NCBI GenBank assembly: GCA_028826165.1
Contig: JAPDFW010000072.1
Location: 310,001 to 374,000 of the forward strand
Direction of reading: 5' to 3'
DNA: 64,000 nt
DNA from: Anaeramoeba ignava BMAN
Taxonomy: Eukaryota > Protista > Anaeramoebae
The position numbers and the translations under genes were made by a program. Positions 1,121-19,892 of this stretch are shown here, piece by piece. Each line of letters starts with the position of its first letter. Position 1 is the first letter of the stretch. The notes below the pieces were generated by a model. The model was not told the origin of the DNA and did no database searches. It worked only from the letters and a program-made list of their open reading frames with translations.

Positions 1121-2710
1121 TTTAATTTTTAATTTTTAATTTTTAATTTTTAATTTTTAATTTTTAATTTTTAATTTTTAATTTTTAATTTTAATTTTTA
1201 ATTTTTAATTTTAATTTTTAATTTTTAATTTTTAATTTGAATTAATCTAAATATTTTAATTTGAATTAATATAAATATTTTAATTTGAATAAATATAAAT
1301 ATTTTAATTTGAATAAATATAAATATTTTAATTTGAATTAATATAAATATTTTAATTTGAATTAATAAAAATATTTTAAATTGAATTAATATAAATATTT
1401 TAATTTGAATTAATATAAATATTTTAATTTGAATTAATATAAATATTTTAATTTTGAATTAATATAATAATTTTAATTAATTTAAAATATAAATATTTTA
1501 ATTTGAATTAATATAAATATTTTAATTTGAATTAATATAAATATTTTTAATTTGAATTAATATAAATATTTGAATCAAATCTAAATAAAAAATTTGAATT
1601 AATATAAATATTTTAATTTGAATTAATCTAAATATTTTAATTTGAATTAATATAAATATTTTAATTTGAATTAATATAAATATTTTAATTTGAATTAATA
1701 TAAATATTTTAATTTGAATAAAATCTAAATATTTTAATTTGAATTAATATAAATATTTTTAATTTGAATTAATATAAATATTTTAATTTGAATTAATATA
1801 AATATTTTAAAATTGAATTAATATAAATATTTTAAAATTGAATAAATATAAATATTTTAAATTGAATAAATATAAATATTTAAAATTGAATTAATATAAA
1901 TATTTTAATTTTGAATTAATATAAATATTTTAATTTGAATAAATATAAATATTTAAAATTGAATTAATATAAATATTTTAATTTGAATAAATATAAATAT
2001 TTTAATTTGAATAAATATAAATATTTTAATTTGAATAAATATAAATATTTTAATTTGAATTAATATAAATATTTTAATTTGAATTAATATAAATATTTTA
2101 AATTGAATAAAAAGGGTGGAATATAAATATTTAAAATTGAATTAATCTAAATATTTTAATTTGAATTAATATAAATATTTTAATTTGAATTAATCTAAAT
2201 ATTTTAATTTGAATTAATATAAATATTTTAATTTGAATTAATCTAAATATTTTAATTTGAATTAATATAAATATTTTAATTTGAATTAATATAAATATTT
2301 TAAATTGAATAAATATAAATATTTTAATTTGAATTAATATAAATATTTTAATTTGAATTAATATAAATATTTTAATTTGAATTAATCTAAATATTTTAAT
2401 TTGAATTAATATAAATATTTTAATTTGAATTAATATAAATATTTTAAATTGAATTAATATAAATATTTTAAATTGAATAAATATAAATATTTTAATTTGA
2501 ATAAATATAAATATTTAAAATTGAATTAATATAAATATTTTAATTTGAATTAATATAAATATTTTAATTTGAATAAATATAAATATTTAAAATTGAATTA
2601 ATATAAATATTTTAAATTGAATAAAAAAGTGGAATATAAATATTTTAAATTGAATAAATCTAAATATTTTAAATTGAATAAAAAAGTGGAATATAAATAT
2701 TTTAAATTGA
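1121..2710. repeat. Intergenic tandem repeat: (TTTTAA)n followed by ~24-bp unit TTGAATTAATATAAATATTTTAAT
   Basis: Many near-identical 24-bp copies are visible; a few variants carry AAAAAGTGGAAT. Confidence 0.9.
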
Positions 2711-2937
2711 ATTTTATTTAAATTTATGTTAAAAAAGTTTGTTTTTCTGTTTAGTTTTAAAAAAAGAATAGAAAATAAAAGGAAAAAACAAAAACATAAT
2801 TTTTATAAGAAATTATTCACATTTAATTTATTTTTTAATTTATTTTTTTTCATTTTTTCATTTTTTTATTTCCAACTTTTAAATTTTATTTATTTTTATT
2901 TTTTTAATTCCCAAAAATAATAAAAAATAAATAAAAA

Positions 2938-5900
2938 ATGCAATCTTTAGATGAATTACTTGCTTCTTTGAATAATTCTTTAACAACTAATGAATCTGAA
3001 ATTTCGAATAATTCTCAATCTAATATAAATATGAGGAATGAATCTGCAAATTCTCTTGATGATCTTTTAGAATCTTTAAATAGAAATTCACAAGAAAATT
3101 CTCAAAATCCTAATTTAGAAATTCCTGATTTAAATCAATTATCTGGAAATTCAAATTGTAATAATTTTTTTTATAATATTAAAATTAAATTCAAATATAA
3201 ATCTAAATCTAAATATAAATATAAATATAAATATAAATATAAATATAAATATAAATCCAAATCTAAATCTAAATATAAATCTAAATCTAAATATAAATAT
3301 TTAAAATATAAATCTAAATCTAAATCTAAATCTAAATATAAAATATAAATAAATATAAATATAAAAATATATTTAAATATAAATATAATATATAAAATAT
3401 AAATTGAAAAATATAAATATAAATATAAATAAATATAAATATAAATATAAAAATATAAATATAAATATAAATATAAATAAAAATATAAATATAAATATTT
3501 TAAATATAAAATATAAATATAAAATAAATTTAAATAAAATAAAAATATAAATATAAAATAAATATAAAATATAAATATAAAATATAAATATAAATATGAA
3601 ATATAAATATAAATATTTCTGTTTAAATTTTAAAAATAAATAGAAAAAAAATAAAAAGGAAAATAAAAAATATAAAATAAAATATAATTATAAATTTAAA
3701 TATAAATATAAATCATTTATAATTTGAATTTTTCAAATATAAAAATAAATATAAATTTTTATATATAAATATAAATATAAATCTAAATCTAAATATAAAT
3801 ATAAATCTAAAAATAAAATATAAAAAATAAAAATAAATAAAAATAAAATAAATATAAAATTGCTAAATCTTTAAATAAAAAATACAACTATGAATATAAA
3901 TATAAATATAAAATAAATATAAATATAAATCTAAATAAATATAAATATAAATATAAATATAAATATAAATCTTATAAATATAAATCTAAATCTAAATATA
4001 AATATAAAATAAAAATATAAATATAATTATAAATCTAAATATAAATCTAAATATAAAATCTAAATATAAATCTAAATATAAAAAAAAATATAAATCTAAA
4101 TATAAATATAAATCTAAATATAAATATAAATATGAATATAAATATAAATATAAATCTAAATATAAATATAAATATAAATATAAATATAAATACAAATATA
4201 AATATAAATATAAATATAAATATAAATCTAAATATAAATATAAATCTAAATATAAATCTAAATATAAATATAAATATAAATATAAATATAAATATAAATA
4301 TAAATATAAATATAAATATAAATACAAATATAAATACAAATATAAATATAAATCTAAATCTAAATATAAATATAAAATTTAAAATTAAAATCAAATAAAT
4401 TAATAGCAACTCAAAAAGATGATCTTGATTCATTACTTGATTCACTTAAATTTGAGCAAATTCCGAAACAAAATTCAAACGACTTGCAACAAAAAGATCA
4501 AAACACACAAGATCTAGATGATTTATTAGACTCACTTGATGGTTTACAAAATCCAAATCAAAATCCAAATCCAAATCCAAATTTAAATTTCAATCCAAAT
4601 CCAAATTTAAATCAAAATACAAATTTCAATTTAAATCAATTTGGAAATCAAAATTTCTCACCCAATAAATTCGATTTTGGTAATTCACCAACAATCAGAA
4701 AGAATACACAACAAAATCCATATGATTTTCAAAACACACAAAGTCCAAACATAAAAACAAACTATGAAACCCAATTTACAACTCCAACAAAAACAACTGA
4801 AAATATGCGAATGAATTCAATCGACCAGCTTCTGCAAGGAAACTACGGACAAACATCGCCAAATCCAAGCAACATAACAACACAAACAGGAGGAATAGAT
4901 GGGAATTTTGACAATTTATTAAAATCACTTGGAATTTCTCAAATTTCACGACCGAATCAAACAACAACAACCAATTTTCAGCCAAATTCATTTAGCAATC
5001 TGACACCAAGACAGAGCAGTTTTACGACAGGATTGTCATCACCAGTGCAACCGCCGCGAACAGTATCAACGGGGCTCACAAACGTGGACGAATTGATTAA
5101 ATCGCTGTCACAAAACACACCAACACAAAATTTTTCTCGAAATCCTTCTTTCCTTTCTGGAATACAGACACCCAATTCCGAGCTGAAAACAAGCGGGTTC
5201 ATAAGCCAAAGACAAGAAGTCAATAATGAAATTGAGAGTGCGGACGATTTCTTGAATAAATTAAAATCGGCGAAAAATCCGCAATTTAGTCCGCAAATTT
5301 TGGATCAAAAAAACGAACAAGAAAACACACAAAACACGGACAAAGATAGCAATTTCGAGCACATGTGGGAAAACGGGACAACATATGATGTGGATTGCAA
5401 TGGGATCCATTCAAAATACAGTAAAATAAGCGACATCTACGAGCAGATGTCGAGCGGAGACACGATAAGAGTATTTCCAGGAATCTACCACGAGAGCATG
5501 GAAATCAAGAAAGGCATCCGGATCATTGGATTTGGACAGAAGAACCAGGTTGTGTTTGAAAACCCTGAGGCGGAGTATGACAAGCCGATATTCCAGTTTC
5601 ACTCGAGTTTTGGGAGTCTGAAAAACATCTACATTAAGTATTCAGGAATTGATACAGGAATAAAGCTTTTCACAGGAACAGTCACAATCGAGGGGTGCAC
5701 AATCAGCTCACAAGGAGTGTCTGGGATCACGGCAGAAAGCGGCGCTCAGCCTCAGATCAAAGACTGCGTGATCTCCGGATGCAAGCAAGTGGGTGTGCTT
5801 ATCCTCTCGAATAGCACTGCCGGGAAGCTTGAAAATAACACCTTCTCAGACAACTTGATCTCAGACATAGAGATCAAAACAGAAGCAAGCCCAACCATTA

Positions 5901-13292: not shown

Positions 13293-16200
13293 ATGATAAC
13301 TAATTCCTTTATAATTGAAAAATCAAATCAATTTACAAATCAAAATCAAAATCAAAATCAAAATCAAAATCAAAATCAAAATCAAAATCAACTTGTAAAT
13401 CAAAATCAAAATCAAAATCAAAATCAAAATCAAAATTTAAATCAAAATCAAAATCAAAATCAAAATCAACTTGTAAATCAAAATCAACTTGTAAATCAAA
13501 ATTTAAATCAAAATCAAAATTTAAATCAAAATCAATTTACAAATCAAAATCAACTTGTAAATCAAAATCAAAATCAACTTGTAAATCAAAATCAATTTCA
13601 ATTTGTAAATCAAAACCAAAATCAATTTACAAATCAAAATCAACTTGGAAATCAAATTGGAAATCAATTTCAAAATCAAAATCAAAATCAAAATCAAAAT
13701 CAAAATCAAAATCAAAGTCAAAATCAAAATCAAAATCAAAATCAATTTCAAAATCAAAATCAAAATCAATTTCAAAATCAAATTGGAAATCAACTTGGAA
13801 ATCAAAATCAAAATCAAAATCAATTTACAAATCAAAATCAAAATTTAAATTTAAATCAACTTGGAAATCAAAATCAAAATCAAAATCAAAATCAAAATCA
13901 AAATCAAAATTTAAATCAAAATCAAAATAAAATGCAATTATCACCTTTAACACTAAAATCTCCAAATTTAATAAACCAAAACAAAAATTTATTTCAAAAT
14001 CAAAATAAAACATACTCAAATAATACAAATTTTGGATCAAATTTGAATTCAAATATTTTCAACAAACAAAACAAATCAGAACCATTTACTTTATCAACAT
14101 CAAAAAAATTATTTCCAAAACCCAATTTAAAACCAGTTCAATTGTTTCAAAGACAAAATTTAAATTTAAATTTAAATTCAAATTCAAATTCAAATTCAAA
14201 TTCAAATTCCCAACAAGAAATTGATTTAACTTTCAATACAAATAATAATTCAAATTCAAAATTAAATTCAATTTCAATTTCAAATTCAAATAATAATATG
14301 AATCCTAATCAAATCATAAATTCAAATAAATTCTCTTTTTCACAAAAAAATACTTTATTATCTCAACAACCTTTAAAATCTCAAAATTTATCTCCCTTTT
14401 CAACTCCAAATTTAAAAAATTCTCTAAATTTAAAATCTTCTTTATTAAAAACATCACCTCCTTCTAATTTCAAACCATTAACCAACGAGAAAATTCCTTT
14501 ATTACAATCAAATTCATTTCCAAAAAAACTTGATTCAAATTTTTCTATTCAAAATCAAAATGATTCAAATAATTTTTCACAACCATTTCAATCACAATCA
14601 AATGAGAAAAAAATATTTTCAAACTCAAACAACACAAATAAAGCTCAAAATCAATTTATAAATCAAAATCAAAATATAAATCAAAATCAAAATCAAAATA
14701 TAAATCAAAATTTAAATAAAGATCAACATATTACAATTAATAACAATCATATCCGAAATAATATTTATGTTACATCTGATACACAATTCAGTTTCCAAAA
14801 CCAAAACCAAACCCGAAATAATCAACCTCAAACATTCTTTAATCAAAACCAAAAAATTACAGTAAACTCAAATTACCAAAAATTCGCAAATTTATTTGAT
14901 AAGGATGAAGAAAAAGAAATAGAAGAAAAACCTAAAAAAATATGGACAAGTACATTTGATAAATCCTTCTCACCACTTGGATTATCAAACAGTAAATTGG
15001 ATCCAAATATTTCACTATCAATGAGTAATAAAAATACACACGAAAAACTAGAAATAGATTTGGAAGCAGCAAAAACATGGATTTTCCCAATAAATAAGCC
15101 CAAAAGAGATTACCAATTCAGTATTTGCTATACATCATTGTTATATAATACACTAGTATCCTTACCAACAGGATTAGGCAAAACATTTATTGCAGGAGTT
15201 TTGATGTATAATTTTTACAGATGGTTTCCAAACGGAAAATTAATTTTTATGGCACCAACAAAAGCACTTGTTTCTCAACAAGTAATGGCAGTTTATGAGA
15301 CTGTTGGATTGCCTTTGGAAGAAACTGAGGAAATGACAGGAGATATAAACCCAGAAAAACGCGTCAATTTATGGAAAACAAAGAGGATTTTTTATGTCAC
15401 TCCTCAGTCACTCAAACACGATCTGGAAAATGAAATTTGTCCTTCTCATCTTGTTGTTTGCGTTATTGTTGATGAAGCTCATAGAAGTATGGGCAAATAT
15501 CCTTATACAGAAGTTGTCAAGATGCTTTTATTTAATAGTTCTAATTTCCGCATCCTTGCTTTGAGTGCAACACCAGGAACTTCCAAAGAAAAAATACAGC
15601 AAATTGTCAATAATCTTCTCATTGCAAAAATCGAAAATCGAGATGAAAGTGATAGCGATGTTTCCAAATATTTGCATGATAAAACAATCGAAACATACAC
15701 AATTTCACTCCAACAAAACAACGAATTAATCTTGTTGAAGAATATATTTAAGGATATTATTGAATCCCAATTGAGGGAATTATATGATAGTGATTTGATA
15801 TATTCTGCAAATATAGATGTAATGAATACATCCAGAGTATATGGAGCATATTTCAACTTGAAAAAAACACAACAAACACAAAAAAAACAAGATTTGCCAC
15901 AAAATGCACTTATAACTGCTCTTTCCCATTTTGGATTGGTTCTCACTCTTTATAAGGCATGGGATAGACTCATTCAGCATGGAATACTATCTTTTTATGA
16001 ATTTATCCAGAAGAATTACATCGATTGCCCAAAAAATCAACTCAGAAAAAAGGAAAAAGTGTTGAATCACCCTTCTTTTTTGAAATTGCAACAAATGCTT
16101 CCCAAAATTATCAATGGATTAACTAACTCCCATCCCAAACTTAAAAAATTGTATGAGATTGTTTCCTCTCATTTTGAAGAGAAAATGAAACAAGGAAATG

Positions 16201-19200
16201 AATTCTACCAAAATTCGCGAGTCATTGTTTTCTCTTCTTTTCGTGATTCTGTTGATGTTATTACATCCACTCTTTCTCAAAATCAACTGATCAAAGTAAT
16301 GCCTTTTATTGGGCAAAGTTCAAAGAAGGGAAGTCGTGGATTAACCAGCAAAGAACAGAAATTTGTCATCGCAAAATTTAAGGAAGGTGGTTTTAACACT
16401 TTGGTATCAACATCAGTGCATCCCGATGAATATATTATTTTAATGAATCCTCATAATGAAATTGTGATTGAGAAAATTGGAAAATTTGTAGAAATGTTTC
16501 TTGTTCCAAAAAATCAAGATCCAAAAACCAAAAAAATACCAAAAATCAATGCAAAAAGAAACATTTCCACTCAAAATTGGAAAAGTCTTTCTTGCGACCA
16601 ATTTGGTTCTAATGTTGGTTTTTATCCAATTACTCATGTCCATCGACATGTTAGAAGAAGTAATGTTGTTGATGTAAAACTTTCAAATGGGTTTTCAACT
16701 CTTGTAACTGAAGATCATAGTTTGTTTACAGCATACAACAACAATAACAACCAACAGAAACTTGTATCATTTAAACCTGAATTAGGAAAGTTGTGTAATT
16801 ATTGTGTTCAAATTCCTGATATTGACTCGAAAAAAACAAGTATTGATTTAGTCTCAGAAATGCTCAAAGAAACAAATTCTTTTCCTTCTTCAAAATTAAT
16901 TTGCGTTTTCCAAAACTTGGATCAAATCAAAATGCAAGATTTATATGAAGATTTCCAATGTTTATCCAATAAAAAATGTTATTCACATAAAATTCCAAAA
17001 TTGGTCAATTCTCAATTTATTATTAAAATGGAAGAAAATGGAATTGAACAATTTATTATTACCCAAAAAGGGAAAAAATATTTTGGAGCAATTTTGTGGT
17101 TAATGGAAAATGTATATTTTAATTTGAAATTCAGAAGATATTCACGAATATTTACAGAAAACAACAAAAAAATAAACTTTAACTTTAACGAACCTAAATT
17201 TATCAAAAAGAACTTTTCTCAAAAAATTTATTTTGGAACAAATCAAAACCAAAATGTCCCAAGATTTTTGGAAATAAACCCGCAACTTTTGAGATTTATT
17301 GCAAATTTTCTTGTTTATGGAGAAGTTATTGATTCCCCACAAAGCAAGAATAAATTAATCCAGTTTAAAAATGTGAGAACAGAAAAACAGAAAAGAAAAA
17401 TTATTGAAAATGCAACAGGATTCATTGATTGTAAAAAATGGCGAGAACGAAGTGATTTAAATGGAGAAATTTTAGAAATTGAAGGAGATTTAATTTTATC
17501 AATATTCCAAATGTGTTTTCATTGTGATCCTCAAGAACAAATGAAAGAAATTCCAAGATTTATTTTTTCGTTGGGAAAAAAATACAAAAAAGAATTTATA
17601 AATGAGATTTTCAATTCAAATTTTCAAGTCAATGATAAAATGTTGCGAACATCAAGTAGAAAATTAATTATTGGGATAATTTTATTAATAAGACAAACAG
17701 AAATTTTTTCAAGAAAGGAAATTAGTATTAAAACTAAAGCATATAAAGATGGGAAAGGAGTAATTTTTGAGGTTGGAAAAAAGAAAAGAGAAAAAGAACA
17801 AGAAAATGAAACATTATTTAGTAAGATTGATAGTATTGATATTATTGAGAGGCAACCAGAATTTGTTTATGATATTTCTGTATTTGGAACAGAAAAATTT
17901 TTTGGAGGAGTTGGATTAATTAATATTCACAATTCTGTTGGTGAGGAAGGACTTGATATTGGAGAAGTTGATTTGATTGTTTGTTATGATTCGTCGAGTG
18001 ATCCAAAACGTAATATTCAACGATATGGACGAACAGGAAGGAAAAGAGAAGGAAGAGTAGTAATTCTTGCGACAGAAAATTCAGAAGAATTAACATTGAA
18101 AAAAAGTGCAACCAAAAAGAAAGCAATTGCAAAAGAATTAAGTCATGTTGATCAATTTGAGTTATATTCAAGAAATCCAAGAATGATTCCTGATGATATT
18201 AAGCCAGTTTGTGTTGAAAAGAAGTTGGAAATTCTTCCTTTGAATTTTTCGGATGTGAAAAAGAAGTTTAAAAGAAGAAGTCCACAAAAAAGATCAACTA
18301 ATTTACCTTTTTTATCAAAATCAGAAATTGATTTTTTGCAATCGAGGTATCATATTATGGAATATGAATTTGGGAGTTTTAAATTTGATATTGAGAAAAA
18401 TATTGAAGATCAAAAAATTTTAAATGATTGCTATGAAGTTGGGCATTCAAATAGAACAAAATTATTGAATGAATTTCTTTTATATTTTGAGAATAATCGA
18501 TTAAATACAAATTTAGAAACAAATTTAGAAACAAATTTAGAAACAAATTTAGAAACAAATTTAGAAACAAATTTAGAAAGAAATTTAAATACAAATTTAG
18601 AAAGAAATTTAGAATCAAATTTAGAATCAAATTTAAAAAGAAATTTAAATTCAAATTTAGAAAGAAATTTAAATTCAAATTTAGAAAGAAATTTAAATTC
18701 AAATTTAGAAAGAAATTTAAATTCAAATTTAGAAAGAAATTTAAATTCAAATTTAGAAAGAAATTTAAATACAAATTTAGAAAGAAATTTAAATTCAAAT
18801 TTAGAATCAAATTTAGAATCAAATTTAGAATCAAATTTAGAAAGAAATTTAGATACAAATTTAGAAAGAAATTTAAATACAAATTTAGAATCAAATTTAG
18901 AATCAAATTTAGAAAGAAATTTAGAATCAAATTTAGAATCAAATTTAGAAACAAATTCAAATACAAATTTAAATACAAATTTAAATACAAATTTAGAAAC
19001 AAATCCAAAAGAAGGAAAAAACAAAAAGGAAGATAATAAAGATAAGAAAAACAAACATAAGCATAAACATAAGCATAAACATAAACATAAACATAAACAT
19101 AAACGCAAACATAAACACAAACATAAACACAAGCATAAAAATAAAAATAAAGATAAAGATAAAAATAAAAATAAAAATAAAGATAAAGATAAAGATAAAG

Positions 19201-19892
19201 ATAAAAATAAAAATAAAGATAAAGATAAAGATAAAGATAAAACAATGGTTCAAAAGCAACTTGAATTCGAAAAAACACCAAAAATTCTTCCATTTCAAAG
19301 TACAATTGATAAGATTAAAAATTTTTCAAACAATTTCAACAAAGAAATTCAAATTGAAAATGAAAATTTAAATCAAATTCAAAATGAAAATTTAAATCAA
19401 ATTCAAAATGAAAATTTAAATCAAGATCAAATTGATAATGATAATGATATTATTAAAAATGAAGATGATTATGATAATTATTATGATATAGATTACGATA
19501 TGGATTACGATATGGATTATGATATTGATTATGATAATGAAATTAATGATGATTATGATATGGATGAAGAATTAAGTCAAAATGAAAATCAAATTGAAAA
19601 TCAAATTCAAAATCAAATTGAAAATCAAAATCAAAATCAAAATCAAAATCAAATTCAAAATCAAAATCAAAATCAAATTCAAAATCAAATTGAAAATCAA
19701 AATCAAATTGAAAATCAAATTGAAAATCAAATTGAAATTCAAAATCAAAATGAAATCGAAAATCAAAATGAAAATCAAAATCAAAATAAGATTCAATCAA
19801 GATTTGCTAAATTTTTGAATGTTAATAAGAAATATGAAAATATGAAAAATTCTTTTGGTTCACATAATATTTCATCTTTATTTAAAAAATAA
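13293..19892 (+). CDS. FANCM: FANCM/Mph1/Hef-family DEAH helicase precursor containing an intein; long N/Q-rich termini; no ERCC4 nuclease domain seen
   Basis: PKRDYQ, LPTGLGKT, FMAPTK, VDEAH, LALSATPG, HPKL, FIGQ, LVST|SVGEEGLDIGEVDLIVCYD, QRYGRTGRKREG. Confidence 0.92.
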   Translation: MITNSFIIEKSNQFTNQNQNQNQNQNQNQNQNQLVNQNQNQNQNQNQNLNQNQNQNQNQLVNQNQLVNQNLNQNQNLNQNQFTNQNQLVNQNQNQLVNQNQFQFVNQNQNQFTNQNQLGNQIGNQFQNQNQNQNQNQNQNQSQNQNQNQNQFQNQNQNQFQNQIGNQLGNQNQNQNQFTNQNQNLNLNQLGNQNQNQNQNQNQNQNLNQNQNKMQLSPLTLKSPNLINQNKNLFQNQNKTYSNNTNFGSNLNSNIFNKQNKSEPFTLSTSKKLFPKPNLKPVQLFQRQNLNLNLNSNSNSNSNSNSQQEIDLTFNTNNNSNSKLNSISISNSNNNMNPNQIINSNKFSFSQKNTLLSQQPLKSQNLSPFSTPNLKNSLNLKSSLLKTSPPSNFKPLTNEKIPLLQSNSFPKKLDSNFSIQNQNDSNNFSQPFQSQSNEKKIFSNSNNTNKAQNQFINQNQNINQNQNQNINQNLNKDQHITINNNHIRNNIYVTSDTQFSFQNQNQTRNNQPQTFFNQNQKITVNSNYQKFANLFDKDEEKEIEEKPKKIWTSTFDKSFSPLGLSNSKLDPNISLSMSNKNTHEKLEIDLEAAKTWIFPINKPKRDYQFSICYTSLLYNTLVSLPTGLGKTFIAGVLMYNFYRWFPNGKLIFMAPTKALVSQQVMAVYETVGLPLEETEEMTGDINPEKRVNLWKTKRIFYVTPQSLKHDLENEICPSHLVVCVIVDEAHRSMGKYPYTEVVKMLLFNSSNFRILALSATPGTSKEKIQQIVNNLLIAKIENRDESDSDVSKYLHDKTIETYTISLQQNNELILLKNIFKDIIESQLRELYDSDLIYSANIDVMNTSRVYGAYFNLKKTQQTQKKQDLPQNALITALSHFGLVLTLYKAWDRLIQHGILSFYEFIQKNYIDCPKNQLRKKEKVLNHPSFLKLQQMLPKIINGLTNSHPKLKKLYEIVSSHFEEKMKQGNEFYQNSRVIVFSSFRDSVDVITSTLSQNQLIKVMPFIGQSSKKGSRGLTSKEQKFVIAKFKEGGFNTLVSTSVHPDEYIILMNPHNEIVIEKIGKFVEMFLVPKNQDPKTKKIPKINAKRNISTQNWKSLSCDQFGSNVGFYPITHVHRHVRRSNVVDVKLSNGFSTLVTEDHSLFTAYNNNNNQQKLVSFKPELGKLCNYCVQIPDIDSKKTSIDLVSEMLKETNSFPSSKLICVFQNLDQIKMQDLYEDFQCLSNKKCYSHKIPKLVNSQFIIKMEENGIEQFIITQKGKKYFGAILWLMENVYFNLKFRRYSRIFTENNKKINFNFNEPKFIKKNFSQKIYFGTNQNQNVPRFLEINPQLLRFIANFLVYGEVIDSPQSKNKLIQFKNVRTEKQKRKIIENATGFIDCKKWRERSDLNGEILEIEGDLILSIFQMCFHCDPQEQMKEIPRFIFSLGKKYKKEFINEIFNSNFQVNDKMLRTSSRKLIIGIILLIRQTEIFSRKEISIKTKAYKDGKGVIFEVGKKKREKEQENETLFSKIDSIDIIERQPEFVYDISVFGTEKFFGGVGLINIHNSVGEEGLDIGEVDLIVCYDSSSDPKRNIQRYGRTGRKREGRVVILATENSEELTLKKSATKKKAIAKELSHVDQFELYSRNPRMIPDDIKPVCVEKKLEILPLNFSDVKKKFKRRSPQKRSTNLPFLSKSEIDFLQSRYHIMEYEFGSFKFDIEKNIEDQKILNDCYEVGHSNRTKLLNEFLLYFENNRLNTNLETNLETNLETNLETNLETNLERNLNTNLERNLESNLESNLKRNLNSNLERNLNSNLERNLNSNLERNLNSNLERNLNSNLERNLNTNLERNLNSNLESNLESNLESNLERNLDTNLERNLNTNLESNLESNLERNLESNLESNLETNSNTNLNTNLNTNLETNPKEGKNKKEDNKDKKNKHKHKHKHKHKHKHKHKRKHKHKHKHKHKNKNKDKDKNKNKNKDKDKDKDKNKNKDKDKDKDKTMVQKQLEFEKTPKILPFQSTIDKIKNFSNNFNKEIQIENENLNQIQNENLNQIQNENLNQDQIDNDNDIIKNEDDYDNYYDIDYDMDYDMDYDIDYDNEINDDYDMDEELSQNENQIENQIQNQIENQNQNQNQNQIQNQNQNQIQNQIENQNQIENQIENQIEIQNQNEIENQNENQNQNKIQSRFAKFLNVNKKYENMKNSFGSHNISSLFKK
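16413..17933 (+). mobile_element. Intein (507 aa, Ser1...His-Asn, +1 Ser) with degenerate LAGLIDADG homing endonuclease, in FANCM helicase motif V
   Basis: Removing it restores TLVST-SVGEEGLDI. Block A SVHPDEYI, block B LVTEDHSLF, block F EFVYDISVFGTEKFFGG, block G LINIHN/S. LAGLIDADG-position remnants are LLRFIANFLVYG and KEFINEIFNSN. Confidence 0.93.

Follow-up and report, generated by a model that had tools for sequence, protein, structure and literature searches.

A nuclear gene of Anaeramoeba ignava BMAN that encodes a FANCM/Mph1-type helicase carries, inside helicase motif V, an in-frame insert that is best read as a genuine class 1 intein: translated as part of the helicase, predicted to splice itself out of the protein, left with a dead homing endonuclease and fixed in Anaeramoeba. 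We place the probability of this reading as a whole at about 0.88. The gene lies in the window, that is, the whole stretch of 64,000 nucleotides that was analysed, and its features are collected in Table 1. Throughout, an arrow marks the junction between intein and host.

Table 1. Features of the intein-bearing helicase gene, in positions of the window
Feature	Position	Strand	Details
FANCM/Mph1-like SF2 helicase gene	13293..19892	+	Single open ORF, 2199 codons
N-extein helicase core	15000..16412	+	Pfam ResIII/DEAD and Helicase_C positions 13-72; motifs start at 15171 (Walker A, GLGKT), 15471 (DEAH) and 15564 (SAT); last residues NTLVST
Class 1 intein, predicted to splice, 507 aa	16413..17933	+	Ser1 (TCA) to His-Asn (Asn507, AAT), followed by TCT (Ser+1); PF14890 match, AF2 model, open frame
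Block A, SVHPDEYIIL	16413..16442	+	Ser1 nucleophile 16413-16415
Block B, LVTEDHSLFT	16701..16730	+	Thr99 16707-16709, His102 16716-16718
Degenerate LAGLIDADG motif 1	17286..17330	+	...FLVYGEV vs archaeal ...YV(A/S)EG; Tyr at catalytic Glu position
Degenerate LAGLIDADG motif 2	17586..17630	+	...IFNSNFQV vs relatives' ...(G/T)DG; Asn at catalytic Asp position
Blocks F and G, QPEFVYDISV ... GGVGLINIHN	17853..17933	+	Asp487 17871-17873, His506 17928-17930, Asn507 17931-17933
C-extein	17934..18533	+	Ser+1 17934-17936; remainder of motif V, SVGEEGLD; motif VI, QRYGRTGR, at 18018; Helicase_C 74-109

The window is extremely rich in A+T. Its GC content is 20.8% (about 79% A+T), with intergenic samples at 6-9% GC, and a value of 80.65% A+T has been published for A. 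ignava BMAN, whose assembly is roughly one-sixth the size of the A. flamelloides assembly (PMC11550330). The genome assembly analysed here comprises 147 contigs with a total of 42.8 Mb, in which the intein profile matches at least 38 times within long open frames. The exteins on either side of the insert were searched separately against solved structures, and human FANCM (9el5) was the first match of both, with an E-value of 7e-101 for the N-extein and 9e-25 for the C-extein (residues 474-565). Hef of Pyrococcus furiosus (1wp9) was second in each case, at 1e-52 for the N-extein, while RIG-I and Dicer matched the N-extein at only about 1e-13. The host is a FANCM/Mph1-type SF2 DEAH helicase with a core nearest to FANCM and Hef. 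A C-terminal ERCC4-like nuclease followed by HhH is typical of FANCM and Hef and is missing in Mph1. A Pfam search of positions 17934-19889 found no ERCC4 or HhH domain after Helicase_C, and the same was true of the FANCM paralog described below; the architecture is thus Mph1-like. Outside the helicase core, the protein begins with Asn/Gln-rich repeats and ends in NLE-type, His-Lys and acidic repeats. An earlier note on this DNA, made from its letters, had proposed that motif V of a nuclear helicase of the FANCM/Mph1 type harbors an intein and had mentioned that Anaeramoeba is reported to be intein-rich, and the structure matches and the number of intein matches agree with that proposal.

The insert interrupts the helicase at a single, well-defined point. 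The residues around its N-junction read ...NTLVST↓SVGEEGLDIGEVDL..., and the Pfam model of Helicase_C ends at position 72 on the N-flank and resumes at position 74 on the C-flank. In 1wp9, the N-flank stops at residue 426 and the C-flank begins at residue 427. Together, these two breakpoints define a clean break in motif V. Removal of the insert would rebuild the conserved host motif, LVST↓SVGEEGLD, exactly as the earlier note had described for an in-frame insertion of 507 residues, and its coordinates were correct to the nucleotide. The 507 codons contain no in-frame stop, compared with about 48 expected from composition; a stop-free frame was obtained in none of 20,000 shuffles (analytic P about 9e-23), and the remaining five frames of the insert hold 20-53 stops each. 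The open frame across the insert is not due to chance.

Within this frame, every splicing block that had been claimed (Ser1, LVTEDHSLFT, QPEFVYDISV and IHN↓S) is present. In an alignment of 14 sequences, T99, H102, D487, H506 and N507 are invariant and Ser1 is nearly so, one row being truncated; Ser+1 lies outside the alignment. The large majority of the Hef copies from archaea discussed below share the block A pattern S(V/L)HP(D/E)E, and a few differ from it at one or two positions. The Pfam profile Intein_splicing (PF14890) matches the insert at 44.4 bits against a curated cut-off of 35.8, a cut-off exceeded by all three Anaeramoeba copies of the element, and, among PDB sequences, the region of blocks F and G weakly resembles the Mja TFIIB intein and PI-PkoII. 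An AlphaFold2 model of the intein, built from the 14-sequence alignment, reached a pLDDT of 78 and a pTM of 0.80. Its best Foldseek match was PI-PkoII (2cw7; E 4.8e-26, TM 0.66), with both domains covered, and further matches were to VMA inteins (TliVMA), mini-inteins and hedgehog Hint domains, as well as to I-DmoI and I-SceI for the middle part. Judged by sequence and predicted fold, the insert is a genuine class 1 intein with a Hint splicing domain, and splicing is the behavior that these features predict. PI-PkoII, the DNA polymerase intein of Thermococcus kodakarensis, resembles it in overall structure and in blocks F and G but occupies a different host protein and site, has an active endonuclease and shares only 15% identity. 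The fungal VMA1 and PRP8 inteins are likewise nuclear, eukaryotic and class 1 with a LAGLIDADG insert; however, their hosts and sites are unrelated, they start with Cys1 rather than Ser1, and the fold match to PI-SceI is weak (E about 1e-6).

Much closer relatives are found in archaea. A word search with the intein alone retrieved a partial archaeal protein (P0001, E 5e-23) whose Helicase_C, intein, LAGLIDADG_3, ERCC4 and HhH domains mark it as Hef, and a longer query that contained the intein retrieved P0003 and P0004, both complete Hef proteins that carry this insert (E about 1e-34). By BLASTP, the window intein is collinear with P0001 from end to end, with the same C-junction (...LHN↓SVAEEGLDI in P0001). 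Scans of genomes yielded six additional complete copies in MAGs that bear the labels Woesearchaeota, Pacearchaeota, 'Methanosarcinales' or unclassified archaeon (a seventh match, L013, is the same contig as P0001). A scan of metagenomes added about 26 more, on contigs that are mostly low in GC (about two-thirds at 28-36%, the others at 44-49%) and with a site that in all of them reads ...(A/S/G)(T/S)↓S(V/L/I)... ...HN↓(S/C)(I/V)(G/A)EEG(L/I)D.... The flanks of one copy, L010, match DEAD/ResIII and Helicase_C 5-72 before the insert and Helicase_C 74-109, ERCC4 and HhH after it. About 30 archaeal contigs carry what is, by alignment, an allelic intein at the identical site of Hef. In addition, two viral contigs contain a more distant full-length relative (23-25% identity), located at Helicase_C position 74 of a ResIII-type SF2 helicase. 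The earlier note had likened the splicing blocks to those of archaeal and viral inteins and had advised a comparison of insertion sites; the nearest relatives are indeed the allelic inteins of archaeal Hef together with that of the viral SF2 helicase, all at the same site.

The archaeal Hef inteins of motif V (P0001, P0003, P0004, L010-L016 and L024-L049) share with the window copy the site …T↓S…HN↓S(V/I)(A/G)EEG(L/I)D, collinearity over the full length, and the Ser1, TxxH, VYDI and HN signatures. They differ from it in having an intact LAGLIDADG domain that passes the LAGLIDADG_3 profile, and their overall identity to it is 26-30%. Their hosts also end in a nuclease tail with ERCC4 and HhH domains, which is absent from the Anaeramoeba host. 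A closer donor did not emerge from the genome, viral and metagenome scans, in which about 35 relatives share at most about 30% identity with the window copy. A literature search on Hef inteins returned nothing relevant.

Two further copies of this intein are present in the same genome. The first lies in a second FANCM gene, FANCM-B, a 1619-aa ORF on contig C124 with the site NTLVST↓S...HN↓SVGEEGLD. The second, on contig C77, lies in a DEAD-box helicase with the site ILIAT↓S...HN↓SVAGRGLD, and its C-extein is that of DDX46/Prp5 (6y50, E 3e-46), with a KH_12 tail. All three Anaeramoeba copies split Helicase_C between positions 72 and 74. A weak match on contig C69 was rejected as a member of the family, being a DNA-polymerase intein. 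The genome has only two FANCM genes, with the intein in both, and the C-terminal region of DDX46 is single-copy. Because there is no intein-free copy of FANCM or DDX46, these genes could function only if the family splices; and because an intron-rich eukaryote needs Prp5, we infer that this intein lineage splices efficiently.

The intein would thus be translated as part of the FANCM precursor, inside motif V, and would leave it through an N-O acyl shift at Ser1, attack by Ser+1, cyclisation of Asn507 and an O-N shift, joining LVST to SVGEEGLD so that the RecA2 domain is restored. It is improbable that splicing has ceased, with the insert persisting as a tolerated dead intein or in a host gene that has become a pseudogene: the endonuclease part is clearly decaying, which would suit such a state, but all splicing residues are intact in each of the three copies, no stop interrupts the 2199 codons, the break in motif V falls within the RecA2 core, and the genome offers no intein-free substitute for FANCM or DDX46. 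The family to which the intein belongs aims at one structural site, Helicase_C 72 to 74, in the Hef of many uncultured archaea, in FANCM and in the viral SF2 helicase, and one of its lineages now resides in both FANCM paralogs and the sole DDX46/Prp5 gene.

The central part of the intein has fared differently from its splicing blocks. Neither LAGLIDADG motif retains its catalytic acid (Table 1), and about 40-50 residues of the endonuclease domain are missing C-terminal to motif 2 (alignment columns 460-590). Both sister copies likewise have other residues in place of either acid in the alignment. The LAGLIDADG_3 profile (PF14528) matches none of the Anaeramoeba copies, even at E-values as high as 5, whereas its scores for the relatives from archaea and viruses are 31.7-45 bits and exceed the cut-off of 22.5. 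Among the relatives, L015 is the only partial exception, with the motif 1 Glu kept and Gly replaced by Ser. From the alignment and the missing Pfam match, the homing endonuclease is judged to be dead in all three Anaeramoeba copies, and the loss of both catalytic acids together with the partial deletion of the domain would make the element fixed and immobile. The earlier note had missed both the dead endonuclease and the two sister copies.

Two smaller observations concern the same domain. A Glu located two residues past the motif 1 position (YGE) could conceivably substitute for the lost acid, which leaves a small doubt. Moreover, the predicted fold of this part is still LAGLIDADG-like, a prediction that the archaeal sequences in the alignment may have shaped.

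An intein that is still mobile, or one whose conditional splicing regulates FANCM activity, has little to recommend it. The Glu just past motif 1 would have to sustain cleavage in an element of which no copy retains either canonical acid or a complete domain. As for regulation, the host is a DNA-repair helicase, like the hosts of many prokaryotic inteins for which conditional splicing has been proposed, but Ser1 and Ser+1 provide no redox switch and the sequence indicates no sensor. Nothing in the analysis speaks for the post-translational control of fork repair that had been suggested for this gene. The intein, spliced out of each precursor, would instead be an immobile passenger, retained only because its imprecise loss would ruin motif V.

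The history of the element was approached through two trees. In an IQ-TREE analysis of 14 sequences, the Anaeramoeba inteins of all three genes group together (100/100), with the two FANCM copies as sisters (94/90), and this clade meets the Hef inteins in a polytomy. When the sampling was raised to 33 sequences and the tree was rooted on the viral relatives, the Anaeramoeba inteins (98) branched as the sister group of the archaeal Hef inteins as a whole (SH-aLRT 84) and not from among them; the internal order of the Anaeramoeba clade is then no longer resolved, and the branches, 1.3-2.0 in length, gave long-branch warnings. Between FANCM-A, the gene in the window, and FANCM-B, identity is 46% for the N-extein and 38% for the intein, whose parts differ among themselves, with 64% identity in the N-splicing part, 26% in the endonuclease and 59% in the C-splicing part. 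Compared with P0003 from archaea, the window copy has 31% identity in the helicase core and 56% in the N-splicing part. The GC3 of the intein is 0.18, which is host-like. These comparisons suggest a single old entry into the Anaeramoeba lineage, after which the intein would have reached the second FANCM gene by spread or duplication, and DDX46 by an ectopic jump.

How the intein first came to be in a eukaryotic FANCM is a separate question. Across domains, the intein is more conserved than its host, which favors lateral transfer over descent from an archaeal ancestor; from this we infer that a lateral entry at some old date is plausible. Lateral transfer had also been put forward in the earlier note, and it stands as a plausible origin, tempered by the sister rather than nested position of the Anaeramoeba clade, the distance of even the nearest relatives and the host-like composition. 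The alternative is a vertical relic, in which the Hef of the archaeon that gave rise to eukaryotes already had the intein, FANCM received it at eukaryogenesis and only Anaeramoeba has kept it. FANCM and Hef are counterparts, the insertion site is identical, and the position of the Anaeramoeba clade in the viral-rooted tree is compatible with such descent. We nevertheless give this scenario a slim chance. A word search of 5.8 billion proteins, a collection that seemingly has no Anaeramoeba proteins and in which an exact look-up of the 2199-aa product found no entry, revealed no other eukaryotic FANCM with an intein; the archaeal carriers with a taxon label are the Woesearchaeota, Pacearchaeota and 'Methanosarcinales' MAGs and none is Asgard, most carriers being unclassified; the N-splicing domain is far more similar to its archaeal counterpart than the helicase cores are; the sister position may reflect long-branch attraction; and Anaeramoeba is known for the lateral uptake of inteins and genes (PMC10710043, PMC11550330).

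A laterally acquired intein would be in keeping with what has been published on this genus. According to the main text of Gallot-Lavallee et al. (2023, PMC10710043), three Anaeramoeba strains carry 45 to 103 nuclear inteins each, mostly in replication and repair proteins, with 103 in BMAN; 29 of the hosts have intein-bearing prokaryotic homologues, usually at homologous sites; and the inteins have spread among paralogs as well as between unrelated proteins that share a motif. The same text describes frequent loss of the endonuclease and experimental demonstration of splicing for three inteins. The present element resembles those described there in the kind of genome, the location in a conserved motif, the site shared with prokaryotes, the spread among paralogs and the decay of the endonuclease. 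FANCM, Hef and DDX46 are not named in that main text; the FANCM intein exceeds the threshold of a standard HMM, which makes its inclusion among the 103 very probable. Within the published set of Anaeramoeba inteins it is an ordinary case, and the novelty attached to it in the earlier note was overstated.

As a discovery, the locus thus carries little weight, because nuclear inteins, prokaryote-like sites, jumps and decayed endonucleases in Anaeramoeba were all described in 2023. What is added here, on the strength of sequence comparison, is the site shared with Hef and the viral helicase, the two sister copies, and the loss of the endonuclease acids in all three. One family is found at one structural point of four SF2 helicases, namely archaeal Hef, FANCM (in two paralogs), DDX46/Prp5 and a viral helicase, which makes the locus a convenient case of homing that tracks a conserved motif and not a gene. 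Protein splicing would be indispensable to the organism's two FANCM genes and its only DDX46 gene.

The remaining explanation, removal of the insert from the RNA, is very unlikely. That the segment leaves as a spliceosomal intron instead of leaving the protein has a next to negligible probability, as the boundaries (ACA↓TCAGTG ... CACAAT↓TCTGTT) offer no GT..AG at the in-frame ends, the GC content is 26%, compared with 28-32% in the flanking exons and about 8% in A. ignava introns (PMC11550330), the frame is free of stops throughout, and the encoded protein has about 30 homologues. In the contigs of one sequencing run, which are of unknown kind (RNA or DNA), one contig spans position 16413 unbroken, others lie inside the intein, and no joint skips the insert. 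An odd joint also occurs in these contigs, leading from 14927 to 17466 with 6 extra letters; it was rejected as a real junction, the segment 17400-17640 being unique in the genome, and the contig was taken for chimeric.

The intein that splits motif V of the window's FANCM/Mph1-like helicase has a sister within the same genome, located in a different helicase gene. The host of this copy is the spliceosomal DEAD-box helicase DDX46/Prp5, the sole such gene in the genome, and the sister shares about 37% identity with the window intein. Its junctions read ILIAT/S...HN/SVAGRGLD (slashes mark the intein boundaries), and the copy represents a jump across different SF2 helicase families with the insertion position, between 72 and 74 of the Pfam Helicase_C model, unchanged. 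An allelic intein is also found at an insertion site identical to that of the window intein in a second FANCM/Mph1 paralog (ORF of 1619 aa), whose helicase core is 46% identical to that of the window FANCM. An intein in a family-B DNA-polymerase-like ORF, with weak similarity to the window intein (E 1e-4), is unrelated to it.

Inteins and low-complexity tracts in the A. ignava genome (C, contigs; L, stretches)
Feature	Location	Strand	Remarks
Sister intein, 519 aa	C77:230841-232397 (L002:1501-3057)	-	splits motif V of DDX46/Prp5
Allelic intein, 512 aa	C124:79781-81316 (L006:5782-7317)	+	in second FANCM/Mph1 paralog
Polymerase intein	C69:117550-118059 (L007, ORF 2262..5222)	-	in family-B DNA-polymerase-like ORF; ends ...LLCHN/T
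Tracts flanking FANCM helicase	window 13293-15000 and 18534-19892		low-complexity; very long

Outside this genome, an intein allele whose LAGLIDADG motifs are intact is widespread at motif V of Hef, the archaeal counterpart of FANCM, among uncultured archaea (L010-L016, L024-L049); most of the contigs that carry it are low in GC. Motif V of a viral ResIII helicase, on the viral-type contigs L018, L019 and L053, holds a distant relative. None of the papers in the library searched describes a Hef intein.

Of the 2199 codons of the predicted window FANCM ORF, over half fall in low-complexity tracts, which consist of NQ repeats, NLE(T/S/R) hexads, runs of HK and DK, and DYD/ENQ repeats. One contig of the sequencing run X1 fuses window position 14927 to 17466, with six additional letters (GGGATT) between them, at a depth of 19. 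Since 17400-17640 occurs only once in the genome, the joint looks like an assembly chimera among the run's contigs rather than a real rearrangement.
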